Source of the DNA: Orbicella franksi
Taxonomy: Eukaryota
DNA length: 64,000 nt
Direction: 5' to 3'
NCBI GenBank assembly: GCA_964199315.1
Contig: OZ116705.1
Coordinates: forward strand, 30,132,001-30,196,000
Position numbers and translations under genes: made by a program. The notes beneath the pieces are model-generated. The model ran no database searches. It was not told the origin of the DNA and saw only the letters and a list, made by a program, of their open reading frames with translations. Of the stretch, positions 9,901 through 51,612 are shown piece by piece; the stretch's first letter is position 1, and each line of letters opens with the position of its first letter.

Positions 9901-10197
9901 TCATTGGTTAACAAGCCTGGTTGGCAGCCACTAAAGCTAGACCAAACAGGAATCGCTAGTTCTTCCAAAGCACATTCCATCTACAGCTGCTCTTCCTTTG
10001 GACCAACATTTGGAGGAGGACACGGTATTTACATTGCCAACAACGCTGCATCAAACACCAATTCATACTCAAACCTTGGATGGACCTACAGCCCGCCAGC
10101 TGGTTACAGCTATGGATCCTCCTTCACACAATCTTTCCTGGCGGGTGGTTACAACTTCCGGCCTGACGAAGTCGAAGTCTTTTATGAAACTACCTGA
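660..10197 (+). CDS. Copy A: secreted H-type-lectin-like x6 / follistatin-Kazal / C-type lectin / cbEGF x3 / TLDc protein (5'-partial; exons 1-2 upstream of window)
   Basis: Exons 3-18, all with AG/GT boundaries, compatible phases and no stops: 660-824, 1399-1509, 2052-2177, 2536-2632, 2856-3074, 3208-3584, 3851-4018, 4235-4345, 4558-4674, 5134-5224, 5777-6151, 6364-6486, 7543-7665, 7884-8018, 8857-9090, 9854-10197 (TGA). Exon lengths match copies B and D, except that exon 18 is shorter in B. Bases 1-659 align with intron 2 of copy B. Confidence 0.9.
5325..5561. mobile_element. TTAA-flanked MITE (Kolobok-like termini) in intron 12 of copy A
   Basis: TTAA-AGGAGCTACGTCACAGT ... ACTGTGACTGTGCCCCT-TTAA imperfect terminal inverted repeats. 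The element is absent at the same site in copy B (26661, cgctg-ttaa-aaataagat) and in copy D. The superfamily call is inferred from the TTAA target plus AG..CT termini. Confidence 0.75.
6743..7344. mobile_element. 602-bp MITE with 2-bp AT target duplication in intron 14 of copy A
   Basis: TIRs TGCTGGTTTTCA / TGAAAACCAGCA, flanked by AT (6741-6742, 7345-7346). The empty site gggtaATataaat is present in copy B (~27775-27787) and copy D (~55015-55030, minus strand). Confidence 0.85.
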
Positions 10198-11277
10198 AGA
10201 AATCGCGGAGCTTGCAGTATTAGTTTTACACACCCTGTACAGAACAACTAAACCTTTGCAATTATTCAAGTATATATAGAAACTGTTGGCAAATTATAGA
10301 AGCGCAATATAATCAGAAAATTTCAATATCGCCGATGATATCTCAATCAATAGGTTAGTACAAAATCGAGTAGTCACGTATCCTTAGTCGAAGATAAACA
10401 GTTTACTTTGAGCGGCTTACTTGTTTGGTAATTGCCATTAAAGGATGGTTTCATGGCTCCGTGTTATAACAAGCTATAACGTTAGCCGAGCTACTGACTT
10501 CTGCGAGAACTGAATTTCCTTTGAGACTTTATCCTCAGTCACAGTAACAAGGTGATAGCAGTAATGTTTCTTATTAGAATTTCTTACTCTATGTTTTAAT
10601 TAATACCTATATTGTTTATCCACCAATCGAATAAAAGTAGCTAACGTGTGTGTGTGTGTCCAGAGTAAGACCTTAGCCGCCGAATGAAAGAATTTAACGT
10701 TTAACTGACTAAACTGAATTCGTTTGATAAAACGATAAATCCGCTGACATCTTGATAAAATTTGGGCATCAGTCTTTCTGGTTTCACAAATTATAGTATG
10801 TAGTTGCTGAACTACATGTGGCTCAGTAAAAAAAATGAACAAGGTAGTAGTTTATAGTCACGCTATAACTTGTACACGCGCTGAACCGTGAAATTATCCC
10901 TTAAGAAGGAGAATCTTGATGCTGAGTTTCAATTGTTTGAATTCCACGAACATCATACCAGGATAAGTAGCAAGTTACAGGATTCCAGCTGGTTTTGATT
11001 TCTTATTTTATTCAAGTAAAGGGGATTTAGAAAAAGGATATTGAGAAAGTATGATAGAGTAAGCATTTTTTTGTTTTTTTTCTTTGTTTGTAGTAATTAT
11101 GAATTGTCTTTTGAGAGTGCTAACGTAGAAAATAAATACGTGTCAGGCACACCGTTATAAAAGCTTGGAACAATAAAATAGAGCAGGGTGAAAATAACGC
11201 GTTGTTTTGTGTTTGTGTTCGTTCTTATCTAGGCGAAAAGAAATCTTTTTTATCACTGTTATTGAGAATTGTCAAAG

Positions 11278-20800: not shown

Positions 20801-22628
20801 CAAGACGATGATGATGATTACGATGAAAAAACCTGGGAAGTTTAAATATTTTGTACTGATTAGTGTTTTGTACTGTTATTTTTTTAAAGGTTTTCCTTTC
20901 CAGCGAGGTCGCCGTCACATGCCACACATTCCTTCACTGGGATATTCTCATTGTGAAGTAATTGGCCTCAAGCCTTATGTGTTTTATCCTGACAAACCAC
21001 TTGAAGTCCAGATCACTGTCAATCATATTGACACCAGTGACAAGTCATATGTACATGATGCCGCTGTGTCGTGGGTTGAGAATGTCAGTTATGATCGATT
21101 CACTGCGTGTGTGATGGCGGCAGGCTACAATGAGCGGAAATCAAAAGCTAACGTGACAGTTGATTGGATGGCGTACCAAGGGGCTCCAGTGGGTGGTGTT
21201 GCCGGGGAAGTACGGATATCACAATGGTGGACTGGAACGACTTGTAAATCTGTCAATTTTCCATCGGTAGGTACTTTTTTGTTTCATTTTACAACTCAAG
21301 TTCACGAACAATAATTTCGAATAGCTTACAGTTATCGGATTTATTTCAATATAATATGATTTCCTTTGGACTAATGGGACTAAAATGTCACCTATCACTC
21401 AGCCATAAATTAGAGCACTAACCCGCGCTAAGTTTTCAAATCCTCGTTACTGTTAAACAGCACTAGGGCAACAGGAACAACAACATCAGTAAGCTGAACG
21501 TCAACGGTAACAGCTTGTTTTTTTGTTTTCTATGCAGGGAAAGTTTTCAGTGATACCTTCAGTGTTTCTTACCGCAGCGCACTATCGTGCAGGACTCAAG
21601 CGCGATGCTGCGAGTGTGTGGATTGAAGACGTCACGCAATCCTCCTTTAAAGTTTGTTTGAGAGAGCTTCAGAACTACGCAGGATCTCACGACGATGTTT
21701 ATACTGTAAGTTTCTACACCTTTTTTTATGTACCAACCATGAGGCACTGAGAGATCTTTATCACTTACTTTAGCCTCTCAACACTGGTCTTTTGCATTGA
21801 CAGCTAATTAAGTCTCTAGCATACTTTACCATCGAGACATATTAATAAGAAACAGAATCCTGATTTAGACGTTTGCTTATGGTTATCTCACTTAATTTTG
21901 TGAAAAAATACTATTTTCGTCTCGATTTTCTAGTTAACATTTATTTATTTTTGTCTTTTAGAAATGGTTGGCATTTTCTTCTCTCCACAAGCCTCTTTTT
22001 ACAGAACATGATTCAGTCTATTTTGCCAACGCCCAACATCCACCAGCAGATTACAACAATGCCTATTGCAAGGTTGGTGTCTTTTTCGTCTTACTAGAGA
22101 GCTTGCCTAGAATTAGTTTTTTAAAAATTTCAAGAGTGGCTGTACAGGTCCCACAGAACAGCGTCAGTTTAAACAATACTCACTCCGTAGGTTATTGTAA
22201 AATTCAGTTTGCTAGTGGTCAAAGTTGAATAACAACCCGCTTACTCAATGAGAGCTTTTCTTTAGGATATCCAGTTTACTGAAAAGTACAACAGCACCCC
22301 GAATGTGTTCGTATCCGCGAACCATTCGTCTAGCGGTGGAAATCGACAACCAGTACACAATGGAATAACTGCTTGGGTGGAGATAATAGAGTCCTAAAGT
22401 GTGACGTCACGTTACCATGGCGCTGAAATATTGGGTTCTAAACAACTCGGATTATCTCTTGCGCGTAGGTCACGTAGTCTTTGTCATCGCTTTGTCCGGA
22501 GGTCAAAACCCTTCATAACCCTGTGTTTTGCAACAAAAGACGCCACGAAGAAGGACAGAGGGTGAAAAGGTCAATTGCTATTGCGAAATTACCGCTTTGT
22601 CATAGGAAATAGATCTAAAGGGAAGGAA

Positions 22629-24357
22629 ATGGTCTACTGCTTTGCCCCGTCGTGCAACCATTCTTCGGAGAGCCATACTTGCAAATACTTTAAATTTCCG
22701 AGCGCAGAAAAGGAAAAAGACGAATACAAACGATGGATCCGTCTGATAAGGTTCGTAACGGTATTCATCATTATCTTGCTGCTTGAATACAACATAAAAT
22801 ACGGCAGTTTTGAGTGAATGTGCGATTTTCACCGACTCGAAATGTTGTACCGCAGAAGCGACGAATGTCTCAACAACCGCATGCAGTGTTTTTTTATATA
22901 TCATTTTAGTTTGTGAGTGCTTTGATTACGATATTTTTCGTACATTTTGCGTTACCTTGTATTATGAACCTTGAGAAAGCTTGAATATAACTGTGAACGG
23001 AACATGCATTTGTTTTCACTACGCATTAGTAAAATGTGTATGTATAAACATTATAATCACGTAATTCTCACATCAGATCACAAACTAAATGGCGATTTCT
23101 TAATCTTACTTCTACAGGAGAGAAGACAGAATGCCCGGCAAGCACTCAAGGGTGTGTAGCTGTCATTTTAGAGAGGGCAAGAAGTCGAATGGCCCAGAAA
23201 TTTTTGAGCGGAACAAAGACAAACTATTCGCTGAGCAAAGGGGACCTCCTCCAAAGAAAAAGAAGAGTGTGCCCAAGGAGAAGACTTTAAGTGAGTTGGT
23301 AGAACAGGCTCAAAGAAATGAACCACCATCTGTTGAAAAGGAGAATGAACTAAGACCAAAAACAACACAGGAGGTTATCCTTGAGGCAGAACTGGACCTA
23401 GCAAAAAGAGAGTTAAAGAATCTAGAGGATAGATTACACTACAAGAACAGGTGTTACACTGTGACAGAGCTTCCAGGAGATGTTATTAGAATGGAAACTG
23501 GGCTTCCAACAAAAGAAGTCTTTGACATTGTGGTGAGACATGCCTTGAGGTTTAAAGATTCCATTAACTATTTTGCGGGCTGGAAGGTGGAATCTATCAC
23601 CTTTGAGGACCAGATTTTTATTAGTTTGATGAAAGTCAAACAGAACTACACAAACCTACACTTGGCCCAGCTATTTAACTGTAGTGTTGCTACAATTGCT
23701 AACATTGTTACAACATTTATTCATGTGTTGCATGAAATTTTATTTAAAGACATTATGACATCAATTCCATCACGAGACAAAAGCAAGCTATCAGCGCCAT
23801 CATCCTTTAGTCAGTATGGATCTTGTCGTATAGTCATAGACTGCACTGATATCGAGGTTGCAGCACCTGGACTGATGAGTCAGCAAAATGCAACATACTC
23901 ATCCTATCGTGGAATGAATTCATTTAAAGTCATTGTTGGTGTTGCACCAAATGCTGTCATAACCTATGTAAGTAAGCTTTTCCCGGGGTCTATTTCAGAC
24001 AAAGCCATCGTGCAGGAGTCGGGCCTCCTCCAACACTTAACCCCTGGGGACATGATACTTGCTGACAAAGGATTTCTCATCCAGGACATTGTCCCCCATG
24101 GAGTTTCAGTTAATGTACCACCATTTCTGAACAAAGGAGCTTTCACTGAAAGCGAGGCAAGGGCTACAAAGGCTATAGCAAGGTGTCGGATCCACGTCGA
24201 AAGAGCCAATGCCAGGCTGAAAGACTTTAGAATTTTGAGTTTTATCCCCTCCTACTTACGTTGTTATGCTGATGTACTATTTCAGTTGTGTGCTGCTCTT
24301 GTAAATTTGCAATTCCCATTAATTAAGGAGGGATGTGAAGATATGGTTTTTGAATAG
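22629..24357 (+). CDS. THAP-domain DDE transposase (DDE_Tnp_4/Harbinger-like), 453 aa, apparently intact
   Basis: join(22629-22750, 23118-24357). THAP signature MVYCFAPSC...FKFP...W...VCSCHF; catalytic motifs IDCTDI, LADKGF and RIHVERAN; no stops. Confidence 0.88.
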
Positions 24358-24990
24358 TTTTGTTCATAGCATACAAGTGAATGTAAGATTATATTTCAAA
24401 GCTAAAACAACATTTAATTACAAATGTCATGTTGAACTCAAATATAAATTGAATATTTACCGGTATGTTACTCACATCCCATATGCTACATATTTTAAGA
24501 GTGACCATACAACAGACAACACTGTTGCCTTACTTCGAACAGAACTTCTATTACTTAAATGCTTTGTCATAAGAAGTCATTACACTGAAAACTCAAATAC
24601 TATTTTCAATCATCTGTGAAATTATGAAAAATGATCTTAATCATTGCTTGGTAAATGACAAGGGGAAATCCCCCACCTCCCCCTTCCCCAAAGAAAATAA
24701 GTGGAGCTCTACCTCCCAACTTTCTTTCTTGGAAAACTTAATGGAAAGAAAATACTATCAAGCTATTTCAGTGCAATTATAGAATTCTAATATGTTTTCA
24801 TGTTTAAAAGTTTATCTCGAAATCACTCATGGATATATTAGCTGGCTTGCTTTAAAGACTAAGTATCAACCAACCACAATACTCTCCTTCCACTAATTTT
24901 GGGAATGAAAAATTACATGAGTTCTCCTTTGACTACTTTTGGGAATTACAAAGTTAAAATTTCTCTTCCTGATTTGGGGAATTAAAGAAA

Positions 24991-25923
24991 TTACAATTCT
25001 CCTTCCACTACTTTTGGGAATAAATGGTCATGGTAAAATTGAAGTAAGCACGGAATGTTTTCTACCCATGTGTCGTCCCTTTGTATCAGTAAAATAGCTA
25101 CATCTTTTGTAGTCCATACAACAAAATAACAAAACTTCCTACGTGAAAAGTACATTTCTCCCTGTACTTGGTGCCAGTAGACATGCTCTTTCTTCAATGC
25201 ATAACCCCGCCCACTTTCACTTTTCTTAAGGCAAAATGTTCTTGATTTCAAAGCCTCTTCTATTGTAACGTTTCGTTCTGTGTACGGGCACTTCGCTTCC
25301 AAAACAATTTCGTCATCAACAATGCCATCTGGGGATGCCCCAAGGATTCCAGAAGAATCGAACCAGATAGCACAGTAATCTTTTGGCGCAGGAAACAGTT
25401 CAGAAACCGCTTGATTTGAGAGCGATGTGTTGGATTTTCTCTTTCTCCACCGACATTCCACGTCTGTACGGCTTAGATGGTAAATCCCATGAATGAAAAG
25501 GGCGGCCGCGTGACTACATTTAAACGCTCCTCTTGGACATTCGCATTCGGTTGTTTTTATGTTTTGTTGTTCATCCAAGTAAATCTGCAATTGTTTAAAA
25601 TAAAGGATTATTCGTATGGCAAACAAGTTTTTAGAAGAAAAAAAGTTGTGGCAAGATTACACATTGGCCGTCGTTATGTAAACGAAAGTCAACCTGTGAT
25701 ATATACATGTACTTGAGCGTAACCAACAACTTTCGAAAGAGTAACTCACCGTGACTTTATAAACCTTCTTTTTCATACTTGCGTGTACTTCACCGCGTAA
25801 AACTCCCTCGTGATAACTAAATGACTCCACATGATCAGACTTACAATGATTTTCTCCCTTCTTTATCGATTTCTTTTCGTCTGAAAAATAGGAAAGCAAC
25901 GACGCGATAGAAAGCGTCGCCAT
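24991..25923 (-). CDS. SWIM-finger / YqaJ (lambda-exonuclease-like) second ORF of the transposon, 255 aa, probably internally deleted
   Basis: join(complement 25750-25923, 24991-25584). SWIM motif CECPRGAFKCSH; PD-(D/E)xK core GASPDG...EAKCPY, YWHQVQG. The N-terminal YqaJ motifs expected before SPDG are not seen. Confidence 0.75.
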
Positions 25924-28900
25924 TTTGAAAAGCAATACGAGTTTGTTTAGAACCGACTTTTTCGGCGTCATGGTAACGTGACGTCATCGCTTTAGGACTC
26001 TATTCTGTTTCTTCATTTCTTTAGGCATTTCAAAAGCAACTGCATTTTTGACGCGCCAGTCGTACCAAATCTCTCCTATTTGAAAGAGTTCTCGGTTTCT
26101 TCCAATTTTTTCAGGGGAACATGAGTGCAGAATTAGTATCGTACCCTTTTACATCCGTTATTTTCCATCAAATTGAATGCGGGGAAAATGGTAAAATACA
26201 AGATGGCGTCTCCAAGACAACCGAAGTCAACATCAACAAAAACATATCCTGTTGTACAGAAAGTTGAGGGATACCTACAAGATGCAAATGATATGATGTT
26301 GATATGTCTTACTAAAACGAAAACCCACGGGAGGTACATCGATATGAGTTTCCTTTTTCTTCCGAAGATTAAATAATATTTCAGAATATCACCGTGAGCG
26401 TTGCGAAAATTATCTTTTCGACTTCAGTTAGAAGACCACTGATTATTTTTGTTCCTTTTTTTTTTTGCAGTACATCAATACATCCGGTGCGCGAGTTTGT
26501 TTAAAAGAGTTGTACGACACAAAGTATGATCCACTGTCTATCTCATACACTGTCCTTTCAGGTACGGACAAAATAATTAATCGTTAATTTTACTAATGTC
26601 TCGTTCAGTAGTTTAGCTCATTTAGTATTCATATTTTAGTAACTTCTGTCACTTACGCTGTTAAAAATAAGATTTTATCAGGCAATTTCTTGAATTTGAT
26701 TGTTGTTCATAACAAATGACGTCCAGTGTTTCAGTCAGGAGTAAAATGCCAAAACATGTGGAGGTTTTTCAGACAAATGAAGAGCAACTATTTCCTTTAA
26801 AAACACTCAAGACATTCGTAATGATCTCTCTTACTTTTTAAGGATTTATGTTTGTTTACATCTACAGACATTTGCCAGCCAGGATGGACTTACTTTGGTG
26901 GTTATTGCTACTTTTCAAGCCCCGCATGCGCCACATGGTTGACCGCTGAGTCAAACTGTTCTGATATGAACTCTGATCTGGTTACAGTGCACAACCAGGA
27001 GGAAAACGTATTTATTCAGCACCGTCATGCTGGCGATAGATCATGGATAGGGCTGAATGACCGCAGTGTTGAAGGCTCTTTTGTGTGGACAAACAAAGAA
27101 ATTAGCAGTTTTAGGTTCTGGGCTCCAAAGCAACCAAACAACTGGAACAACGAAGACTGTGTGCACACTCTTGGAGTGAGGCATGGATACACTTGGAATG
27201 ACGTGCCATGCGATAACTGCTTCAACTTTACTTGTTTTGCAGGTGATAAATCTGTTGTAATCTTCTAATAAAAAATAGGAGACTTTCCAGAATTTAGCCA
27301 GGAATAATCTTGCGCGCTCCAAAAGGTTCCATGGTTCACTTTCAAAACAATTTCTTACAAGCCAGTACTTAAAACATTATTCGTGTATTTGATGACTATT
27401 TCATTTTTTCCTTATTTAATTTTGCAGATCTAGAGGAATGCTCCACCAACACTCATAACTGTGACGTGAATGCTGATTGTGTGAATACCGTGGGCTCATA
27501 TTCTTGTAAGTGTAGAGCTGGATATACCGGAGACGGAAAACCTTGCAATGGTAAGAAATCTACCAACCGACCATCAAACAAACAACATTAGATGTTGATA
27601 CTGAATTTAATAACAATATCAACAACTGTGAAATTTCTCCACCATTGATAGGCTTAGAAAAAACTGTAACCAACTGCACTTGTGCAATAAGAAAGCTAAT
27701 AGAAAAAAGGTTCAACCCTGTAATAACTTTATTTTTCTAACAGTTTCGAAGCCGGCGCCAGTGGCTTCGAGCCTGGGTAATATAAATCATCTAAAAGCAG
27801 AGAGTGAGTCAGAGGGTGTGGAAAGTAAAATTAATCGTTTTTTTGTTAAAATATTCTGCGCTTACTGTAAATTTTCGACGAACTGTTCTCAAGCTGTATG
27901 CTTCTTTTTTAGTTTTGGTGAAATGGTCAGACTAACGATAACTCAAAGTTTGTCCATATTTACTCCTTTAATCTTGTTTTAGACATAGATGAGTGCTCTT
28001 CAAACTCTCATAGCTGTGATGTGAATGCTGTTTGTAACAATACTCGTGGATCTTACACTTGCGCTTGCAAACTTGGATACTCAGGAGATGGCAAAACTTG
28101 CTCTGGTAAGTTATATCTGCTTAACAAGAACTACAAAATCTGATGATTGAAGAAAAAAAAAAACTGCGAGAGGACACCACATGAAAATCAGGCTATTCGC
28201 CAAGAGTGTGGGACAAGACTTTTCTGGTCCTAATTTTTTCCATTTTCAAGTTGCATTTTTATTAAAACAAGCCTCATACGCAGAATCTTGTTGATGCATT
28301 TATTTAAAACTTCTCTTTAAATGAAATGATGAAATTGCTTATAGCACACGACAGGTGTAGTTGCTAAAACTTGACCGAAAAGGATCATCTGAAGGCACTA
28401 TAAGCCACACTGGGGCAGAAATCTGAAAATTGCAAAAATTGATACCCAGGACGAAAAAGCAGTCCTTTACAATCCCAAATCTTTTGATATGCAAACATGT
28501 TCTGTTGACCAGGAACAGCAATATGGCTTCCATGACAACGCTCTACAACAAGGGTTACTTCCCTTGAGAGGTTTTATTAATAAACATGGTGAACCTTTAA
28601 TCACGACACGTACCACCAAATTTACGATAAAGTACTTTTAAAGTACTACCAACGAAAACTCCTTACTTCAGAACATAAAACACTTTTTGCGGCGACAAAG
28701 TACAAGATAATTTATGTTTGTTTTCTTCCTCTGCCCTGTTCATTATTACCCACAGATATCGATGAGTGTGTCAGCGGTGTACACGACTGCCACCGTTCAG
28801 CTTCATGTACGAACACTGTAGGATCCTACACATGTACGTGTAACCATCCTTTATCAGGAGACGGAAAAACCTGCAGGTACACCGCGGCAGGTGAGTAGTT

Positions 28901-31900
28901 CACGTTAATTGTGCTTCAATTCAGGTAGCAGTGGTTAGAATTAAGTTCAACTTGTCCACCAAATATGAGGTCAATAAAACAAACAAAAAACTGAGATTTC
29001 TTCTTCATTGCTTTCTTTTGTTGGATGGTTTGGAGAAAAGCAATTCGCCAAAACTACTTCGTGAATGGTTCATCTCAGCCGCCGATGTTGCAAATTCGAA
29101 CCGCTCAGGAAACCAATCAGAATTCTCCTTTCCATCTTTCATCAGTTTGCCATATTGGAAGGACTGTTATATTTGCAATTAGAAAATAAACGACTTAGTA
29201 ATGTTGTTTGCTACCTTCTCGCTACTACAGACACACTTTGACATTAACATTAATCACACTTAGAAAGGACAGGGGTGAGCTACAGCCCACGTGGACCTTA
29301 ACCATTAAAAACATATTTCAAAATTTAAATATTTACAAAAGCTGTCAAATTTCGTGATATTACTTACCGCTGGTTTTGCCATTGAGAATTCTGACGTCGG
29401 CGCTGAGCTTTGGTAATGATATAACGTTTTCCTGACAAATACCATCCTAATATTTTCCTGTTCAGGATTTTAAGAGTATTGATCTCTGCGACCCAAAATG
29501 TAGGAACTTGATATTCCAGATAACAAATATTTTAAGTTGCACGGTGGCATATAACGACCACATATAAAATATGTTTCCGAAAAAACAGTACATCCAGTTT
29601 AGTTAGCGTCACATTTACGGTGGAAGCCGAATGATGGTCACCCTATAACTGGTTTCAACATGGTCCACTAAAACAAATGCTAGGTACAAAATGGATGCAA
29701 CGAACGTTCTGATATGTTATTTTTGCAGCGGGTCTTAAATATTCCAGCATTGTGGGAAACAGCCAGAATTTTTTGACATGGCTGGATAAATGGTTAAAGC
29801 CTGTGACTCGCCAATCTTCTTACTGGAATCGCTGTTACCAGACAACTGTAAATGGCTGGTCTTCCTCTACCTTCCATTCAAAGTGTGACGGCAAAGGTCC
29901 AACTGTCACAATCATCCGTGTTGGAAAATATATTTTTGGAGGATACACAAGTGTCTCATGGAGTAAGTGACATGATCAATTTCATCATATCACAGGCCAC
30001 CCAAGCTCAAGCTGTGAGTCAGCCATGATCATATTTCACAATAGCAGTCAAGGAGAAATATGGGAAAAGAGTTTTAAAAAGAATTTTAAAAAAGGAATAT
30101 TTACAATATGATGTGGGATAGTTAAGTGCTGGAAAATTCTTAACCAGATGCCTTATCTTACTTCCATGGTGTATTACTTGCTGTGTTTACGTGCCTCTAT
30201 TCTGATTCGCGACGGTTTTAGGGAGATATCGGGATGGAAGAACTTTATAGGAAGCGGTACAACGGCTTCGAATCATTAAGGAAGGAAACAAAGAAGGTTA
30301 ATACCAAAGAAAGGCAAATAAGTCAATGATACAAGAATTTTTCTGGATAACTCATCGAGATAAACAGGTCGATGGAAACACTTGCATTTTTTAAAAACGC
30401 CTTGGTGTTCCTGGCTAACTGACAGCTTTACAGCTCGATATTAATTTTATGAAATTTATAAAACAGGGCATGGAAATTATGTTCAGTCTGGAATGGGAGC
30501 AGCTGTTTCCAGTCTGCCACCAGACTTGCTTATCCCAGAATTGAAATTATTAAAACCTCAGGAGACATTTAACATACAGGAACCAGAAAACTAAAGATTA
30601 ACACTACAAGAAATAATGCCGAGCTACGAACAGTAGTAAAATTTTGTAAGCCAATCAAGTTAACGTTGTCGGTAATACGTCATTAATGTTGGACTTCTTT
30701 TCCATTGTGTATTTCCAATTAGGCTCCAGTTGTGGATATCGCTACGATTCAGCAGCCTTTCTCTTCTCATTGGTTAACAAGCCTGGTTGGCAGCCACTAA
30801 AGCTAGATCAAACAGGAAGCCATTCCATCTACAGCTGCTCTGATCGTGGACCGACGTTTGGAGGAGGACACGATATATACATTGTAAACAACGCTGCATC
30901 AAGCACCAGCTCATACTCAAACCTTGGACACGACTATGGTCCGCCAGCTGGCAACAGCTATGGATCCTCCTTCACAGGATCATTCCTGGGGGGTAGTTAC
31001 TACTTCCGACCTGACGAAGTCGAAGTCTTCTACGAAACCACCTGAGGAAATCGCGGAACTTGGATTCTTAGTTTTACACACCTTGCTCAGTAAAATTAAA
31101 CCTTTGCAAATATAAAAGGATTTATACCAACTGTTGGTAAATTATAGAAGCGCAATATAATCAGAAAATTTCAATATCACCCATGATGTGTCAATCAATA
31201 GGTCAGTACAAAATCGAGTAGTCACGTATCCTTAGTCTAAGATAAACAGTTTACTTTGAGCGGCTTACTTGTTTGGTAATTGGCATTAAAGGATAGTTTT
31301 ATGGCTCCGTGTTATAACAAGCTATAACGTTTGCCGAGCTAATGACTTCTGCGAGAACTGAATTTTCTTTAAGACGTTCACCTCAGTCACGGTAACGCGG
31401 CGATAGGAGTAATGTTTCTCATTAGAATTTCTTACTCTATTGTTTAATTAATACATATATTGTTTCTCCACCAATCGAATAAAAGTAGATAACGCGTGTG
31501 TGTGTCCAGAGTAAAACCTTAGCGGCCGAATGAAAAAAAATTAACGTTAACTGACTAAACTGAATTCGAAGTTTTGCTCGATAAATCCGCTGACATCTTG
31601 AGTAAAATTTGGGCATCAGTCTTTCTGGTTTCACAAATTATAGTCTGTAGTTGCTGAACTACATGTGGCTCAGTAAAAAAATGAACAAGGTAGTAGTTTA
31701 TAGTCACGCTATAACCGTGAAATTATCTTAAGAAGGAGAATCTTGATGCTGAGTTTCAATTGATTGAATTCCACGAACATCATACTAGGATAAGTTCCAA
31801 GTTACAGGATTCCAGCTGGTTTTGATTTATTATTTTATTCAAGTAAAGGGGATTTAGAAAAAGGATATTGAGAAAGTATGATAGAGTAAGCATTTTTTTT

Positions 31901-32479
31901 TCTAGTAATTATGAATTGTCTTTTGAGAGTGCTAACGTAGAAAATAAATACAAGTGTCAGACACACCGTTATAAAAGCTTGTAACAATAAAATAGAGCAG
32001 GGTGAAAATAATGCGTTGTTTTGTGTTTGTGTTCGTTCTTATATAGGGGGAAAGAAATCTTTTTTTATCACTGTTATTGTGAATTGCCAAAGTCTAATTG
32101 CCTCTGTGAAACGCGCCTTTAGGGAAATCATGGTAGTTGTATTTAAAGTTTGCAATGAAGTCTTGAACTTGTTTCGGGACAACATATGGAAACAACTCTT
32201 CATTCGGTGATCATAGTGATCACTGTACCAACAATCGCTGAGATAGACCTCAATTCTATCTCAGCGATCGTAGCGCGATGGTTGACCATGTAATTTATCG
32301 CCAAGTGTTCTTAACTTTTATACCAAGTAAAAGTTTAAAACTTCTTTTATTTTAAATTTTGCATCAAAACTTGCTTACGACTTAACAACAAGTTCAAACT
32401 CAATTTTGACTCGGTTTGCTTTCGACCTGCGCCAGAAGTTTGAAGCCGTTACTGAAAGAACGAGATTGTACGAGATTGT

Positions 32480-32720
32480 TTACGGCCTAAAATCGCCAAA
32501 GAATCCCATAGCTCGGAGAATTCAGATTGGTTGCCAAGGCGAGGTTTTTAGCGTGGGATTGCGACTCTTGAAAGCAAAGCCTTGCGTGATATTGCACTGA
32601 AGTAACCTTTTAATCATGTTTTTAAAACCATTGTCGCCGTCTACAAAGCCTAAAACAAACTCAAGTCTCTTTTAAAGTGGAAGTGAAGTTTAATTCTCCC
32701 TGCTTTGAACTGAACTCATA
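32480..32720 (+). repeat. Fragment of the intron-2 interspersed repeat in the central spacer
   Basis: gattggttgccaaggcgagg...gcgactcttgaaagc...ccttgcgtgatattgcac...ctccctgctttgaactgaa matches 16640-16850 and the reverse complement of ~62570-62770. Confidence 0.65.
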
Positions 32721-33769
32721 ATTCTTTGAGCTGAGATTATAGATTCAAGATCCAGCATCATTGCTTCTGAGCCATTATCGCCCTCTGTACCTCGGTCGAG
32801 TCTTTCTGATGTTTATTCCTAACCATTTCGAACTCTTTAAAGGCTTGTTTTGGTTCTAGGTACAGAAGTTTGCTGTCTATTAGAGAACCAGGACAAACAT
32901 CGGCATGCTCAAAAAATTACATTCTTATACTTTACTAGCCCCATAGAATATGCAAATGACCAAAGCACACTCAATACCAAAAAATACTCTGGGGAGTGGA
33001 AAAGAGGCAATTTCTAAGTAGTTTTGTCAAAGGGCCACTTGCCTCAACTACTCTGTGAGAGAGTTTAAATGCTCCCTCTCTCACCCCGAACACGAAGTTA
33101 ACAACTTTTACCGTTAGTATGTTGTCATATCGTGTCCAACAGACAAAAATATTGACATCTTGAGAGCCACGTTTTCGATCAGGAATTAGCATTTCGCTTA
33201 CTTGAAGCTCCTTTCCCGCTTTTCCAATATTCTTTGGACTTCGCACTAAAAATATACGTTAAAAAAATGATTGATTTTTGGAACTTTACCCAACAGGGCT
33301 TCATTCGTACCGAATTTGACAAAATTCAAAATTTTTGTTATCTGGTGTGGTACTGTTTTATTATGTTGTACTTAGTTTGTCCATATACCCTCCAGTGTGT
33401 CTTGAGTTCGTTGAGATCGCCAGCTTAGCGAATTATTAACCCGCCGCGTGGGACCACGCACACTAAAACACAGCGGGGTGTAGCTGGGGAACGGAAGAAA
33501 AACGTCTGTGTACAGATTATGTTCTACAAGGTGATTCTAACTTTTATGTCTCTGGATGAAACCCTAGTTAGTGTGTGACAATTCAATAACTAGCTATTGA
33601 ACAGAACTTTCAAGTGGTGTTTATTACGCCGTGTCAAGTTTTTCACACTTTGCTTGTCAGCCATTGACGAACAAACAATCGTAAATAGTGCACAACAGAG
33701 TTTTAAGTCATTGGGCCCCTTTTCCTACACGCATGCGCTTCTGTACTCAAGCAAATTGTTAATAAATAT

Positions 33770-33988
33770 GGGTTGTTGACCAAGTGTGAGGTCAAGATGG
33801 CTGGATATTGGCCAAGTTCCTTTTTTGCGTGTTTATGGACCGAGACGATGTCGAGGTACATAAACTCGCAAAAAATTAAAAGAACGTGGCCAATATCAAG
33901 CCATCTTGGTCAATAAAGGATTCATTATATGGCTTTCGGGGAAATTTTTCTTGCGGGACACGGCGGGTAGTCCTAAGCGGGCAAGATA

Positions 33989-34019
<31 letters not shown>

Positions 34020-34070
34020 CAGCGCAGGATTTGATTTATCTTGACCGCTGACGGAGCTAACCATATAATA
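33770..34070. repeat. Multi-hairpin non-autonomous repeat (MITE-like)
   Basis: Inverted repeats 33793-33813/33888-33908, 33976-33987/33994-34005 and 33924-33932/34061-34069. It resembles an abundant scleractinian repeat (from memory, not searched). Confidence 0.55.
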
Positions 34071-35089
34071 AATTACGTATACCTTACTCTTTAGTTACAG
34101 TAAATTCACCGAGTGTTTGTGGTTATGTATTTACATGTGTCTAGGTCAATGTATACCAGTGTAGCGTTCGGTTGGCGACACTGTACTTTCGTCATTTGCT
34201 GTGCTACATTGGAATATTTGCTGTCTTTCCCACGGTCAATGAAGTTGTGTTGATTTATTCGAGCTATTGCGGTCGAGCCTTGCAACTTCATTCTCACAGA
34301 GAAGTTGAATCGCCGAGAAAAGCAGCTGACTCCTAAAGGACGACACAGATCACAAATCGATATGTTACCCACGCAGTTTCGGAGAAAATACAGCACTACA
34401 CAGCTTTCTGGTGCTTGGATAAGTACCTTTAAGCATTTTAGCTTGTAATAGTTCGAATAAATCAACACAACTTCACTAACATTGGGGAAAACTGCGACGA
34501 TTCCTACGTAGGACAAAGAACGAAGAAAAGCAGGTGGAAATGCACGGGTAGCACCTCATGTAAGACCTCACCATTATTCAAAGCGAGGCATCACATCAGA
34601 CCGAGGCTATGTGTGCCACAATGCCAGTCCAAAATGGCGTCCAAACTATGAAATCATCTGGCATCGCGGAAAATCGCGGGACATAAACCTACGGGAACGA
34701 CCCGATTAGTATGCGTTCTCCTAACGTCGAACGCGATTAAAGGCTGTTAGACCTAGCCGGGTTCGTACCACGCAAGGTCACACTTATATATATATCTCAC
34801 AAAGCGTAGGGCTTTTTTCGTTGGCTTTTGTCGCATACATATCACAGAATAGCTAGGGGGGCAAAAGTGCAGCTGAACATGGAGTGGTAAGGGGTTCTTG
34901 GGTCACAGAGGACACTCCTACCAAAAAACGCATAGTGTACCCACCCACACGCCCCCCCCCCCCACCACACCCACATCTTGATGTTAAAGTTTGTGTTCCT
35001 GCTGGAAAAATTTGCATGTATTCAAGTCGTACAAGCTTACAGACCTTTCTCATTCCATTTCACTCAAGGTTTCTTATGAGACACTTCTT

Positions 35090-35280
35090 TTCCAATGTGG
35101 AACCGCTTGTCTCTATAAATATTGCACGTAAAATACAAGGACCCACACACTGATCGAAAAGAGTAGGGGACGTAGTTCCCTGTGTGGTGGTCTATCTCTC
35201 ATCTAATAGTTAAATGTTCGGAGATATTGGCTGCGTAAGCTATTCTGAAATCCGAGGGTAAATAAAGTAAATATGTATGA
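35090..35280 (+). repeat. Possible SINE 3' fragment
   Basis: cccacacactgatcgaaaagagtaggggacgtagttccctgtgtggtggtct followed by an aaataaagtaaa / tgtatgattgtatgt tail. This resembles cnidarian SINE bodies; recalled similarity only. Confidence 0.3.
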
Positions 35281-38200
35281 TTGTATGTACATCAAAATAA
35301 GTAGCCTCTTTTGCAAGCGTTTTCAGTATTGATCCAAAAAATCTCGCGTGTATTCCAACAAGCTCACAGGGTTTTATTTTCCCTTTGTTATCTTTTCAGT
35401 CTGGAAGCAAAATTGTCAACAAAAGACAGGGTAAAAAACCAAGTATATGGATATTTCTTTCCAAGTCTGTATGCATTTCGCATCCCACTCAGAGTTCAGA
35501 TCAGTTCAGATGTACTAAAATAAACAGGACAAGTATACAGAACACAACTTTAACATAAAGTTAGCTCGATGTCAGTTGAACGTGGACGACTGAATTACCG
35601 GACAACTCAACATGAAAAACTTACAGTAAGTGCTATAAACTGCAAAGCTGTTATTACGATATTATTAAAGGACTGGTCAAAAAGTATTTGGGGATGGGCC
35701 GGAGCAGAGAGGGGGTGCGTCATCAGTTTTTGAGCCCTTAGAAAGGGGTGGGTCATTCGATTTTCAGCGACACGTGGGGGTGGGTCATCATATTTTAAAG
35801 CAGGAATAGGCACTTACTTAAAAGTACTGTTTTTAAAAATGGAAAGCTTGCTTCTGCTGCAAAAGTTGGCCACGCATTTACATGGAAAGCGTTGCAGCGT
35901 TACCGATGAGTAATTTATTTTTGAACGCATTTAAATTACATCTAACCGAAATTAAAACGATAAAAAAACCTCTCTTTTATGTCTTTTTTTAACATATAAA
36001 AAGTATGAATTGTAGACAATATGAAAGGAGTGCCTTTTTTGCATTTCACAGCTATATAGTTCCTTCTACGGGACTACAAATTAAAGCAACTTAAATTTAC
36101 CATGGTTTATAAGCAAGAACTGTAACTGGCTATTATGTATTTCTCATCGTGAACTTTTCATAATTGTTAAAATTACCGAAAAAAATCATTTCTGTACTGT
36201 TCCATAAACTCTGCCTGCTCAACCGTCATCAGTTTCTCTTGCTCTTCAACTTCAGCTATGCTACCTTCTCCGCTGTCTTGATCACAGCCACATGAAATAA
36301 CGAAAGATTTGAATTTCTTGAAATTCGGCCAGAATTAATGAAGCCCTTCGGGCACTAGTTACAAAAATATTGGGTTAAGTTCCAACAATCGATCATTTTT
36401 GTAATGATTTTATTTTATTTTCCACGCCCCAAATCGGCCAAAATCAACCGAACTGAGCGGTATATATTCAGAAGCACGTAAACTCGAAAGTAGAGATTAT
36501 TATTGAAAATTTATTGTAGGTCGTATTTGTACTTCCGTTCTTGTGTATTTAGAGCTAAATAAATCGTGATTTGATTAAAAATAAATATTTCACGTAATTT
36601 TGAAAACTAATTACACAAGACAGCTAAACGAGAGCTCTTCAATTAGCCTTTTTCAGATTTCTCAAAGTACAGTGTTATACTCTTTTTCTTCGAAACTCCG
36701 CGTTCAAATACAATGCTGATAAATCTCCAATTCATTTTTTTTTTTTGCTCTCTCCTTCACATTGCTAAATCTTTAACTGAAAAGAAAAAGGTTCGTGTGG
36801 CGGAATTTCTAGTTTATCCAATAAATCGTGACAGTAGATAATCATGGTATATATGTATTCAACAAAACAAGTTCAAGACTTGATTGGAAACTTTGAATAC
36901 AACTACCATGATTCCCTAAAGGCAGTATTAACAGAGGCAATTGGACAATGAGAAGTCATAGCAAAAGTAACAAAAAAGATTTCTTTCCGCCTAGATAGGA
37001 ACGAACACAAACAGAAAACAACGCGTTATTTTCACCCTGCTGTATTTTATTGTTACAAGCTTTTATAACTTGTACTTATTTTCTACGTTAGCACTCTCAA
37101 AAGACAATTCATAATTACACAAACCAAAAAAACTGTTTACTCTATCATTACATTCTCAATCTACTTTTTCTAAATTCACTTAACTGGAATAAAATGAGAA
37201 ATCAAAACCAGCTGGAATCCTGTTACTTGGAAACCTATCCTGGTATGATGTTCGCGGAATTTAATCAATTGACACAGAGCAACAAGATTCTCCTTCTTAA
37301 GGGATAATTTCACGGTTCAGCGCATGTACAAGTTATGACATGACCATAAACTACTACCTTGTTCGTTTTTTGCTGAACCACATGTAGTACAACAACTACA
37401 GACTGTGATTCGAAAGAGCAGAATGACTGATACCAAAATTTCACAGAAGATGTCAACGAATTTATTGAGAAAATTTCTATTTTAGTAATGAACATTGAAC
37501 GTTTTTGTTCGGCGCGAAGGATTTAATCTAGACACACTCGTAATCTACTTTTATCCGATTGTTGGATAAACAATTTTGTGTTAATCAAAAACGTACGAAA
37601 GGAATTGTAATGAGAAACATCGCTACTGTCGGCGCGTTTTCGTGACTGACGTGAAAGACTTAAAGGAAAATTCCTTGCAGCAGTCATTAGCTTGGTTAAC
37701 GTTATAGTTTGTTATAACACCGAGCCATAAAACTATCCTTTAATGGCAATTACCAAAGAAGTAAGCCGCTCAAAGTAAACTGTTTATCTTAGACTAAGGA
37801 TACGTGACTACTCGATTTTGTTCTAACCTATTGATTGACATATCCTCGTTGATATTGAAATTTTCTGATTATATTGCGCTTCTATAATTTACCAACAGTT
37901 GGTATAAATCCTTTTATATTTGCAAAGGTTTAATTTTACTGAGCAAGGTGTGTAAAACGAAGAATCCAAGTTCCGCGATTTCCTCAGGTGGTTTCGTAGA
38001 AGACTTCGACTTCGTCAGGTCGGAAGTAGTAACTACCCCCCAGGAATGATCGTGTGAAGGATGACTGATTGCTGTTGCCAGCTGGCGGGCTGTAGGTGTA
38101 TCCAAGGTTTGAGTGTGAGTTGGTGTTTGATGCAGCGTTGTTTGCAAGGTAAATATCGGTTCCTCCTCCAAAGTGTGGACCACGATCATAGCAGCTGTAG

Positions 38201-39645
38201 ATGGAATGGCTTCTGTAATAACTATACTGTCCTGTTTGATCTAGCTTTAGTGGCTGCCAACCAGGCTTGTTCACCAATGAGAAGAGAAAAGCTGCTGAAT
38301 CGTAGTGCCATGAACAACTGTAACCTAATTTGAAATACACAATGGAAGAAGAAGTCCAACATCTGAATGATGTTTACTGACACTTAATGACGTATTACAA
38401 TTTATTTTGTTTGGTTCACAAAATTTTGCCATTATTCTAAGCTCGGCATTATTTCTTGTAGTGTTAATTTTAAGTTCTCTTGTTCCTGTATGTAAAATGT
38501 GTCCTAAGTTTTTCATAATTTCAATTCTCGGATGAGCAAGGCCGGTGGGAGACTGGAAACCACTGCCCCGATTTCTGACTACATTGATTTCCATGCGACA
38601 TTTTATAACTTACGTAAAAATAGTTTTCTCAGCTTTGCATGCATGAAACATCATTCTTCAGATCAAAACCACTCAAATCCATTACTTTGTCGTCTGAAAT
38701 CAGTCATACAACTTATGATACCCAGTTCTGAAAATGCAAGTTTCTATTCGCCTGTTTATCACGATGTGTTAACCAGAAAATTCTCAGTATCATTGACTTA
38801 CTTTCCTTTCTCTGGGTGACCCCTTTTTTCTATTCCCTTCCTTTAATGATTCGAAGCTATTATAGTGAGTTACCGCTTCCTATAAAGGTCTTCCATGCCG
38901 CAGTTTTCTCCCAAAATCGAATGAGTTATGAGATATGTAAACCGAGCAAATTATACATCGTGGAAGTAAGGTAAGCAATTTTGTTAAGAATTTGCCACCT
39001 CTGAAATTTCCTAAACTATATTGTAAAATATTCCATTTTAAAACTTCGTTTTAAAATTCTCTGAGACCGCTATTGTGCAATATGATCATCGCTGACTCAC
39101 AGTTTGAGCTTGGGTGGCCTGTGATAAGATGAAATTGATCATGTCACTTACTCCATGAGACACTTGTGTATCCTCCAAAAATATATTTTCCAACGCGGAA
39201 GATTGTGACAGATGGACCTTTGCCGTCACAGTTTGAGTGGAAGGTAGAGGATGACCAGCCATTTACAGTTGCCTGGTAACAGCGATTCCAGTAAGAAGAT
39301 TGGCGAGTCACAGGCTTTAACCATTTATCCAGCCATGTCAAAAAATTCTGGCTGTTTCCCACAATGCTGGAATATTTAAGACCCGCTTCAAAAATAACAT
39401 ATAAGAATGTTCTTTGCATTAATTTTGTACCTAGCATATGTTTTAATGGGTCATGTGGAAAGCTGGTTTTTGTAAGAATTATTAACACTCTCATCTTCAC
39501 CACTTATAAGGACACCATCTTTACTTGCACCGTAAATGTGACGCTGACAAAAGGTGTATTTGTTAGGCGTATTTATTTGTTACTGTTATTGCCACGGTGC
39601 AACTTAAAAGTGTGGTCAATTTTAATGCCAAAGCGTGTCTGTAGT

Positions 39646-41924: not shown

Positions 41925-44870
41925 TTCACGAGAAAAACCGATATTGCACAAATCGCGAAGTGAAGCGAGAAAGCGAAGCAAGAAAACACTGAGTGACATT
42001 TAACAACGTCGAGCAAACAGTTGTAAGTAAAAAATAATTTTATACTCAAATTCGAATTGAAATACAAGCTAAATTTTCAATATTAAAGTCTTTCGAAAGA
42101 ACAACGAGTAGAGAATTAATAGTCTCTCAGCAGAAAAGCTTACCGAGAACTGCCGTTGTACCATATTGCAAGTTGACAGATATATTTACTGGGGAGTTGT
42201 TAAACGATGACAGGCCAGTAAACAGTCAACTGAGAGCTCTCGCTGTAAATCACAAGTGATTGTTGCGTTAACTGCTGTTGGCGAGGCAGGTCCGCTGTTG
42301 ACATCGCAATTTCTCGTAAAACCTTAAGTGGAGCCGGAGCCCCTTCAAGTGTTAGCAGTAGCACTAAATGCAAACACAGCCCGCTTGTTTGACATCCTTC
42401 GTCGTTTTTCCAGAGGCTGTAACTTGAATTGAATCTCCGAGATTTCTGAGCGGATGAAAGTCGTCGTTTTTTCTTTGAATAAGACTGTTTTACGGCCGCT
42501 TGAGTTTGTGAATTTGCCATCCTAGGACACAGTTGACGCGATGTCCTTCGTTTGCTTTGCAAGTGTATTTCGGCCCACTGGAACCATATTATACAAGATG
42601 TCGGATGTTGGGCCTTCACAGGAGTGAGGGAAAAATTTCCAGGAACTCAAAATCAATGCTGTACTGTAGCTGTACTTTTCTTTGTATTCAGGTGAGGCCG
42701 GTAAAGTTCACTTTGAAAGTTGCCATTTCGTAATCTATATATGTCACAATTGACACTGGAGCTTCTTCGGCAGCTGAACTTTGCTTTGAGGCTTTCTGTT
42801 CGCTTGCTTCGGCCATTTTCTTGTCCAAGCCGTTATGATTTTGTCGTTTTCTGGTACTCGGAATCGTCAGCGGCTTCTTATATCTCTCTAAAAAGTTGTA
42901 CTTCAGTTAAAAGCAGGGAGAAACTCCATTTTCACTTTCACTTTGAAAAAGATTTGTGCCTGTTTTTTGCTTCGTAGACTGCGACAGTCGTTTTGAAAAC
43001 ATGATTAAAAGGTCAATGTTGTTTTGCTGTCACTCCTGTGAACAGTCACGCAAAGTATCGTTTTCAAGAGTCGTAATTCCACGCTTAATACCTCGCCTTG
43101 GTAACCAGTCAGAGTGCGAGAATTCTGTGCTATGTTATTCTTCCAATTTGGCAATTCTAGACCGGCGCTTTTGATGCTGTAAACAACCTCGTTACTTAAA
43201 GTAAAGCTCTTTTCCGCACTAATTCCCTTCAAAAGTATCACCAATTTTTTTGACAAATTCTGCACACAAAATACTGGCAGACTTATAGGCAGTTTTTGCC
43301 AATAATTGCCAACTTTAGACATTTATTTATTTATCTTTTTGCATTGTTGGGGAAAAATCTGAGCGCGTGGCCAGGTCTTATTCTTTGAATTGTTTTAATT
43401 TTACGCGAAAAACTGATATATCGCACAAATCGCGAAATGAAACGAGAAAGCGAAGCGAGAAAACTGATATTCAACAACGTCGAGCTAGCAAACAGTTTTA
43501 TAAATTAAGAAATATGTTTACACTCAAATTAAAATTTAAATGCAAGTTAAATTTTCACTGTTCAAGTTCCTCGAAAGAACAACGAGTCGAGAATAAAAAG
43601 TCAAAACGTATTTCTCGCAGCAGAAAAGCTTACCGAGAACTGCCGTAAACAGTCAACCGAAAGCTCTCGCTGTAAATGAGAAGTGATTGTTGAATTGACT
43701 GCTGGTGGTGACGTGGCCCACCGTTGACATCGTAACTTCTCGTTAACTTTGCGTGAAGCCGGAGACGATGCCCTTCATCTCCTTTGCAAGTGGAGCCGGC
43801 GGAGCCACTTCTAGTTTTAAGCAGCAGCACTAAATGCAAACCCAGCCAGCTTCTTTGACATCCTTCGTTGTTTTTCCAGAGGCTGTAACTTGCAATTGAA
43901 TCTGGGCTATATAGCGTGACTTGTCGGCTCCGAGATTTTGGGCGGTTGAAAGTCGTCGCGCACGCTTTGAATATGATTGTTTTACGGCCGCGTGAGTTTA
44001 TAAATTTGCCATCTAAGGACGCGGTTGAGGCGATGTCAGTTCGTCTGCTTTGCTGTGTATTTCGGCCGAGCGGAATCATTTTATACAAGATATTTGATAT
44101 TGATTTCTTTACTGGGGTGAGGAAAAAAATTCCCATGGCCAGGAAAATTGTGACTTTTAAGAGATGGCCTACATCCTCAAAATGAATGCTGTGCTGTAAT
44201 TGTACTTTTTGTTGTATTTGGTGAGGTAATACTCTCTTTGAAAGCTTTCGTTTTGTCTTCCATATGTGTCACAATTGCGGCTGGAGCTTCTTTGCCTTGA
44301 AGCTTTCTCCTCGTTTGCTTCGGAGATTTTCTTGTCCAAGTTATGATTTTGTTGTTTTCTGGTAGTCGCTAGCGTAATCAGCTTTTTCTATCTCTCTGAA
44401 AAGTTGTACTTTAGTTCAAAGCAGAGCGAAACTTCATTTCCATTTTGAAAAAGCCTTGTGCTTGTTTTTGGCTTTGTGAAACATGATTAAAAGGTCACTG
44501 TTAAGGTTTTTTTGTTGTTTCGGTGCAATATCACGCAAGGCCTCGCTTTCAAGAGTCGCAATTCCACGTTAAATGCCTCACCTGGGTAGCCAATCAGAGT
44601 GGGAGAATTTTCTGAGCTCTGCGATTCTTTTGCGATTTTAAAGCGGCGTTTTTGACGCTGTAAACAAACTCGTTACTTTAAGAACAATTCTTTTCTGTGC
44701 TATTTCCTTTCAAAAATATTGACAACGTTTTGACCAATTCTTCAAACAAAAACACTGGTTAAATATAAGGTAGCTTTTTCCAACTGCCTGGCAACTTTTG
44801 GCTTTTATTTAATTATTTATCTTTTTGCAGTTTTTTAGGAAATTCTGATTGCGTGGCCAGGCTTAATTCT
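41925..44870 (-). repeat. Diverged ~1.47 kb tandem duplication inside intron 2 of copy C
   Basis: Units ~41925-43390 and ~43400-44870 each run from aaaaac.gata..gcacaaatcgcgaa to gcgtggccagg. Intron 2 is 3954 bp in C versus 2351 bp in B and 2510 bp in D. Confidence 0.75.
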
Positions 44871-50257: not shown

Positions 50258-51612
50258 CAGGTTGTGGCTCCTGATATCAATTCAATGATTTTGTAAAAGA
50301 AAATCATTCAGTTCTATCTGATCCTTTATTTTTTTTTTTTTTTTTTTCAAAAAAACTCCGTACTCAAATAAAATGCTGATATATCTCAAATTATATATTT
50401 TTGTTTTTTCTTTCAAATAGCCAAATCTTTAACTGAAAAAGAAAACGTTCTTGTTGGTGCAATTTCTAATTTTCTCAATAAACCGCGTCAGAAAATAATC
50501 ATGGTATATGTATTCAACAAAACAAGTTCAAGACTTGATTGGACACTTGAATACAACTAACATGATTCCCTAAAGGCGGGTCTCAAAGAGGCAATTGGAC
50601 ATTGGGAATCAACAGTAAAAGTAATGGAAAAAGATTTCTTCCCGCCTAGATAACAACGAACGCAAACAGAAAACAACGCGTTATTTTCACCCTGCTCTAT
50701 TTTATTGTAACAAGCTTTTATAACGGTGTGTCTGACACTTGTATTTATTTTCTACGTTAGCACTCTCAAAAGACAATTCATAATTACTACAAACAAAAAA
50801 AATTCTTACTCTATCATACATTCTCAACCTACTTTTTCTAAACTCACTCAACCGAGACAAATGAGAAATCAAAACCAGCTGGAATCCTGTAACTTGGAAA
50901 CCTATCCTGGTATGATGTTCGCGGATTTCAATCAATTGAAACTCAGCATCAAGATTCTCCTTCCTAAGGGATAATTTCACGGTTCAGCGCGTGTACAAGT
51001 TATAGCGTGACTATAAATTACTACCTTGTTCATTTTTTTACAAACCCATATGTAGTTCAACAACTACAGACTATGATTTGTAAAAGCAGAATGACTGATA
51101 CCAAACTTTAACAGAAGATGTCAACGAATTTATCGAGAAAATTTCGAATTTAGTAATGAACATTGAGTTTCTTATTCGGCGCGAAGGATTTAATCTAGAC
51201 ACACACACGTGTTATCTACTTTTATCCGAATGTTGGATAAACAATATATGTATTAATCAAAACATACAAAAGGAATTCTAATGACAAACATTACTCCTAT
51301 CGCAGCGTTTTCATGACTGACATGAAAGACTTAAAGGAAAATTCCTTCCAGCAGTCATTAGCTCGGCAAACGTTATAGCTTATTATAACACGGAGCCATA
51401 AAACTATCCTTTAATGGCAATTATCAAACAAGTAACCCGCTCAAAGTAAACTGACATATAGATTGACATATCTCGGTGATATTGAAATTTTCTGATTATA
51501 TTGCGCTTCTACAATTTACCAACAATGTTTGCTTATACCCTTATATAATTGCAAAGGTTTAGTTGTTCTGTACAGGGTGCGTAAAACTAAGACTCCAAGC
51601 TCCGCGATTTCT

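Follow-up and report, generated by a model that had tools for sequence, protein, structure and literature searches.

Interlocus gene conversion between nearby paralogs of tandem gene families is familiar from vertebrates, where examples include the globin, opsin, and MHC genes and CYP21A2/CYP21A1P. Conversion between inverted copies is known from palindromes P1 to P8 of the human and primate Y chromosome, as well as from X-chromosome palindromes: in these, one arm converts the other, and the arms are more than 99.9% identical throughout. Pseudogenes can also act as templates for diversification, as in the psi-V donors of the chicken IgL and IgH loci, the mosaic VSG genes of trypanosomes, and the vlsE cassettes of Borrelia. 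In corals, gene conversion has been proposed for the fluorescent-protein genes (PMC4657232). Our literature search found no paper on the coral lectin-TLDc family that is the subject of this report.

We analyzed a 64-kb stretch of the Orbicella franksi contig OZ116705.1 (the window). Self-alignment of the window identified four diverged copies (A to D) of one gene. They are paralogs from a tandem array of coral genes that encode a putative secreted multi-lectin protein with a TLDc domain. Copies B and C, which are in opposite orientations, share a nearly identical tract of 202 bp. In our main reading, to which we give a probability of roughly 0.8, this tract reflects a single recent non-allelic gene conversion between B and C, of short length (139-202 bp) and without crossover. 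The gene copies and the inverted repeat that B and C form are as follows; the limits of the four copies are from self-alignment, and those of the arms are from self-BLAST and an inverted-repeat scan.

Copy A: ends near 11.7 kb, plus strand
Copy B: 17.4-32.45 kb, plus strand
Copy C: about 45.8-36.7 kb, minus strand; truncated, without a counterpart of B 19.2-29.65 kb
Copy D: 64.0-50.35 kb, minus strand
Last exon of B: 30723-31045, plus strand; encodes the C-terminal half of TLDc (ORF 30686-31045; PF07534, E = 2.7e-8)
Last exon of C: 37984-38318, minus strand; open frame with an approximate 5' limit (ORF 37984-38340; PF07534, E = 7.7e-6)
Arm B, inner part of an imperfect inverted repeat: 30442-32174, plus strand; 82.5% identical to C 36865-38622
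Arm C, inner part of the same repeat: 36865-38622, minus strand
Spacer between B and C: 32175-36864 (4.69 kb); the array changes orientation here

The 497-Mb assembly contains at least 22 full copies of the family, most of which sit in a single array (29.83-30.47 Mb of this contig). Within that array, the plus-strand series ends with B and the minus-strand series starts with C. Because every copy upstream of B is on the plus strand, and C, D, L015, and L013 are all on the minus strand, the spacer between B and C is the point where the array flips its orientation. This spacer contains no ORF of more than 136 amino acids. B and C are convergent (tail to tail), with their copies of the tract 6.7 kb apart, and they are the closest inverted pair within the array. 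The last exon of B is preceded by a splice acceptor (AG at 30721-30722), and the truncated copy C still has an open TLDc last exon.

Copy B also carries a 3.6-kb insertion (22388-26001) that is missing from A and D. The insertion includes an intact ORF for a PIF/Harbinger-type DDE transposase of 408 amino acids (23131-24357, plus strand; PF13359, E = 1.8e-37, plus HTH_Tnp_4) and a second ORF of 211 amino acids with a SWIM zinc finger (24991-25626, minus strand).

An earlier reading of this DNA, made from the sequence only, held that B 30978-31179 and C 37850-38051, with one of them reverse-complemented, match at all but one position, that this stretch covers the last codons and the start of the 3' UTR, and that on both sides of it A groups with B and C groups with D. 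We confirmed all of this: the match is 201/202, the ORFs and the stop codon place the tract as described, and the informative sites on both sides join A to B and C to D. The limits of the tract are given below.

Maximal identity tract in B: 30978-31179, plus strand; matches the tract in C, in reverse complement, at 201/202 positions and is bounded by mismatches at 30977 and 31180
Maximal identity tract in C: 37850-38051, minus strand; 201/202 identical to the reverse complement of B 30978-31179
Minimal converted segment under the main reading: 30990-31128, plus strand; 139 bp, from the first to the last site at which B and C differ from A and D
Near-invariant block: 31129-31179 (51 bp), plus strand; nearly invariant across the family alignment, so that the right end of the tract must fall here

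The tract takes in the final 22 codons along with the stop codon (31043-31045) and then runs 134 nt into the 3' UTR. The single mismatch is at 31070, where B has an A and the copy in C has a C that is absent from all other family copies. Beyond the tract, identity between B and C falls to 76.8% in the intron, 86.6% in the remainder of the exon, and 82.5-85.5% downstream (in sliding windows, the flanks overall are 77-86% identical). Among the sites that are informative for the four copies, 169 group A with B and C with D, 28 group A with D and B with C, and 8 group A with C and B with D. In the four-way alignment, 17 consecutive sites at B 30990-31128 join B to C and A to D, and the sites on either side join A to B and C to D. 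We scanned B against C for exact matches and for matches with one mismatch, and these scans identified no other near-identical patch that is specific to this pair: the only other long matches are in exon 17, which is conserved in every copy.

We considered whether B and C might be held alike by conservation of, or convergent selection on, a functional element. The tract is partly coding, and the block that adjoins the minimal segment (31129-31260) is nearly invariant across the family. However, the states that B and C share are private to them, and few of them affect the protein. Just two codons set B and C apart from the versions in A and D: a change of A to G at 30990, which is unique to B and C, and a change of N to Y at 31001, which B and C share with 6 other copies. 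The other differences between B/C and A/D (15 of 17) are either synonymous (3) or in the UTR (12), so selection or convergence is not credible. Furthermore, 9-15% of the tract positions differ between the B/C version and other copies. A search of the 497-Mb assembly gave 37 matches to the tract, and none of the about 35 other family copies exceeds 91% identity; thus, conservation of this region does not reach the similarity that B and C show. We consider an explanation by conservation or convergence to be next to impossible.

For comparisons across the family, the homologous 3' ends of the other copies were taken from the same assembly. Among 16 copies of the array, the tract includes 74 consecutive polymorphic sites, 73 of which have the same state in B as in C, versus a background agreement of 0.62-0.65. 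When sites were permuted for this pair, none of 100,000 permutations matched the observed run (the permuted maximum was 51), and the analytic P value was about 4e-10. With a mismatch-penalized score, the pairwise P value for B and C was 0.0005 or less. A GENECONV-like global test gave P = 0.77 for B and C, but this score is dominated by the kilobase-long segments that close copies share. It is therefore unsuitable for B and C, and we relied on the pair-specific permutations and on phylogenetic trees.

In a maximum-likelihood tree of the tract, B and C form a group with 100/100 support and a stem of 0.072. The flanks disagree: in the left flank, the best tree constrained to group B with C was rejected with a delta lnL of 330 (p-AU = 2.5e-55), and the right flank had the same outcome, with a delta lnL of 222 (p-AU = 2.4e-4). 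Six states within the tract (at 30990, 31033, 31039, 31115, 31122, and 31128) are exclusive to B and C, being absent from 20 other aligned copies; across 1,699 bp of flanks, no state is exclusive to B and C relative to the same 20 copies. Thus, the locus shows the marks of interlocus conversion, namely, a sharply bounded near-identity, a conflict between the trees of the tract and of the flanks, exclusive derived states, and an excess of concordant sites.

The sequence-only reading had proposed a recent gene conversion between B and C, had suggested formal conversion tests as a check, and had pointed out that whole-unit trees grouping B with C throughout would speak against it. The permutations (0 of 100,000), the conflict between trees, and the six exclusive states strongly support the proposed conversion, and B does not group with C throughout, as the trees of both flanks reject that grouping.

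The corresponding segments of A and D carry the common version of the family, as follows.

Counterpart of the tract in A: 10130-10331, plus strand; common family version, 85.6% identical to B
Counterpart of the tract in D: 51477-51680, minus strand; common family version, 88% identical to B/C

A and D had been described as sharing a different version of this segment. This is correct in that both have the family-majority state at 13 of the 17 sites that separate A and D from B and C, but the tract tree does not pair them: A is placed with L014/L008 and D is placed with L006. Over the tract, A and D are 91% identical. Since they retain majority states and occupy separate positions in the tract tree, there was one event, between B and C, and not a reciprocal pair. 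A reciprocal conversion between A and D was rejected for the same two reasons.

Recombination has made a mosaic of the whole family. The PHI test gave significant results (P <= 0.003) for each of the three partitions (intron, exon, and flank), and Rm was 36 for 138 informative sites in the intron, 13 for 37 in the exon, and 45 for 165 in the flank. Six copies (C, L004, L006, L010, L012, and L016) switch partners between the trees of intron 17 and of the 3' flank. In particular, C groups with L015/D in intron 17 and with L012/L016 in the 3' flank. When we compared pairwise distances among L001-L019 along B coordinates 30000-32200, their coherence collapsed at about 30650-31350, even if B and C were left out. 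Homogenization specific to the exon was tested but not upheld: between sub-arrays, the dS of the last exon (0.18) equals the divergence of the far flank (0.175). Only the proximal UTR is flattened, with a divergence of 0.097 between sub-arrays versus 0.080 within a sub-array, and constraint could explain this equally well.

Several smaller patches were seen along the way. First, B equals L002, which lies 84 kb upstream (at about 30.079 Mb), over 31129-31282 (154 nt with 1 mismatch). This second recent patch begins in the invariant block 31129-31179, abutting the tract shared with C, and B and L002 have in common two states that are otherwise private to B (31182C and 31188G). Second, across the boundary between exon 17 and intron 17, C 39091-39224 (corresponding to B 29890-30023) has the majority states of the plus-strand copies at sites where its relatives D and L015 share derived states. 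In this segment, B and C are 95-96% identical, versus 87-89% for C and D; it looks like an older second patch that C received. Third, the upstream regions of C (44361-44568) and D (62522-62729) match over 208 nt with one mismatch, against a background of 86.5%, and the counterpart in B is about 88% identical. This stretch is either a conserved promoter or other 5' element or another conversion patch. Fourth, the motif GATCG at 30842-30846 is found in B and L010 (plus strand) and in C and L015 (minus strand), and almost all other copies have TCCTA or close variants. This pattern is a motif-scale patchwork across the two sub-arrays.

In such a family, B and C might each have received the tract, in separate transfers, from a third donor that is not among our sequences, such as a haplotype that was not assembled, a copy since lost, or one within a collapsed region. 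In keeping with this, the B/C version has a long branch of its own (0.072) and is grouped only weakly (72/90) with distant copies at 28.4 Mb and with L010, and the mosaic family has exchanged sequence over more than 100 kb, as the grouping of the 3' flank of C with L012/L016 illustrates. However, none of the 37 matches found in the 497-Mb assembly is such a donor. A third donor would also require two events with left and right limits that agree within a few bases, and B and C are already the closest inverted pair of the array. We consider a third donor to be unlikely, and we prefer a direct transfer between B and C.

We also asked what reads and contigs from other runs say about the tract. Reads and Logan contigs, the latter about 100 nt long in this multi-copy family, were aligned to B 30300-31900. 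In run X15, a 119-nt contig covers 30902-31020 with zero mismatches and spans the left junction of B: it joins exon letters that are unique to B (…ACGACTATGGTC…) to the tract-unique letters 30990G and 31001T. The mosaic in B is therefore real in independent material. Runs X15 and X16 each contain a 105-nt contig that covers 31009-31113 with zero mismatches. The right junction of B sits in a block that collapses across paralogs, and none of the listed reads or contigs bridged it or either junction of C. Raw Illumina data from run X22 gave 47 reads, nearly all of them 95-99% alike and mostly from paralogs, with a depth of zero at 30840-31001.

This evidence bears on the possibility that only B or only C truly carries this version, with the other copy having been overwritten in the consensus or during short-read polishing. 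A length of 139-202 bp is on the scale of a read, junction contigs with tract letters were seen for the left side of B only, and the private letter of C at 31070 is in no contig of any of the three Logan runs. However, the native loci would differ at about 20 of the 202 sites and by about 20% in the flanks, so reads would not have been misplaced, given a true locus that is part of the assembly. The patch demands two switches in each copy, while a mis-join would swap the flanks instead. B and C differ at 31070, where the state in C is unique in the family; the left junction of B was confirmed in the independent run X15; and the length of the patch also agrees with what is generally known of non-crossover tracts in animals. 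There are no runs of N in the window. Overall, an assembly or polishing artifact is quite unlikely.

Searches of public data yielded no independent copy of B or C. Exact look-ups of the last-exon ORFs of B and C in public assemblies gave no record, and exact-pattern scans of metagenome contigs for the left junction of C and for the tract core gave 0 matches. A protein search with the last-exon ORF of C had a best match of 84% identity, and the tract signature LGGSYY was in 0 of the 120 proteins listed.

With one difference in 202 bp, the tract is the youngest coalescence within the 2.4-kb alignment. The branch leading to the B/C version is 0.072 long, versus 0.02-0.055 for the terminal branches of B and C in the flanks. 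Branch lengths, boundary states, and nearest relatives gave no direction for the transfer. Contig depths in X15 are 205-207 for the tract and 180-193 for contigs found in B only, which suggests that X15 has one copy of the tract version and that this copy is linked to B. These depths, the lack of the private letter of C at 31070 in every run, and the X1 depths given below hint that the version is native to B and that C is a recent acquirer, on the weak basis of fragmented contigs with holes left by a filter. We therefore lean only slightly toward B as the donor and C as the recipient. The proposal that damaged copies act as donors was not supported: the weak depth evidence from X15, which is another individual, favors transfer from the intact copy to the damaged one (B to C).

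In run X1, which bears a different organism label than X15, the core of the tract (31002-31109) has a depth of 0-20, and the variable part of the exon of B (30823-30925) is present without a mismatch; holes of this kind prove nothing. Individuals may be polymorphic for the tract or for the version that it came from; this version looks absent from X1 and single-copy in X15.

The exchange might instead be one product of a programmed or recurrent diversification system, in which truncated copies such as C are donor cassettes that rewrite a recognition exon, possibly in somatic cells. The genealogy of the family's last exon and proximal UTR is scrambled, B, C, L010, and L015 have GATCG at 30842-30846 in common across sub-arrays, and C is truncated but has kept its TLDc exon open. 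On the other hand, the hypervariable stretch of this exon, at about 30815-30975, lies to the left of the tract, and B and C are 82-88% identical there. The sequence-only reading had suggested that conversion shuffles variants of the hypervariable exon, but this fails here, as the tract consists of the conserved C-terminal strand and UTR. In addition, the four copies show just one recent event, the weak evidence for polarity runs from B to C, and there is no sign of somatic events. Per informative site, the exon has much the same recombination signal as the intron and the flank and is thus no special target. We consider programmed diversification to be very improbable.

A milder proposal is that, in this array with its approximately 20 copies, the last exon and the proximal 3' UTR form a zone of frequent short-patch exchange between the plus-strand and minus-strand sub-arrays, with truncated copies as a reservoir, so that colonies or cell lineages would have different mosaic TLDc ends. 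This seems quite improbable to us. If it were true, it would be a conversion-driven mechanism of diversity for a cnidarian innate recognition protein, and the tract in B and C would be its youngest visible product.

Under the reading that we prefer, a single conversion between B and C, the event would have begun with a DNA break or gap in one copy, close to the end of the last exon. The inverted paralog, at a distance of 6.7 kb on either the same or the sister chromatid, would have been the template from which 139-202 bp were copied during repair, probably by synthesis-dependent strand annealing without a crossover. Repair of this type keeps the flanks and the orientation of the spacer as they were, and tracts of this size fit the natural lengths of non-crossover tracts in animals. 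The right end of the patch would have been resolved within the 51-bp near-invariant block at 31129-31179. Since the conversion, there would have been one substitution, or else one mismatch was left unrepaired. The event presumably took place in the germline or in a stem cell.

On this reading, the tract is a clean and datable case of ectopic gene conversion in a coral, and the two halves of the lectin-TLDc array still exchange sequence despite their opposite orientations. Because exchange occurs within the last exon of the family, trees, dN/dS values, and orthology calls based on this exon will mislead unless recombination is modeled. The six diagnostic bases can be typed in populations, which would give the frequency of the event and its polymorphism.

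How does this locus compare with the described systems? As in interlocus conversion in vertebrates, a patch of a few hundred base pairs lies within diverged flanks, the trees conflict, the partners are close together, and one of them is damaged. Unlike the vertebrate cases, B and C are inverted relative to each other and lie where the array switches orientation, and the host is a coral lectin-TLDc array. The analogy to palindrome arms, which the sequence-only reading had drawn, is loose. Like the palindromes of the Y chromosome, B and C are inverted arms with a short spacer (4.69 kb) and a non-crossover exchange. However, these arms are just 77-86% identical and a single patch of 202 bp has been homogenized, instead of whole arms at more than 99% identity, so the sustained homogenization of a palindrome is not seen. 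The comparison with the psi-V, VSG, and vlsE systems is also partial: a damaged copy (C) and an intact copy (B) of a putative recognition family share a patch, but this patch is on a conserved C terminus and UTR rather than on a variable region, and nothing points to one-way transfer from a silent to an expressed copy or to a somatic or programmed event. The tract in B and C works like ordinary interlocus gene conversion, and it is a new instance of that process rather than, by itself, a new mechanism.
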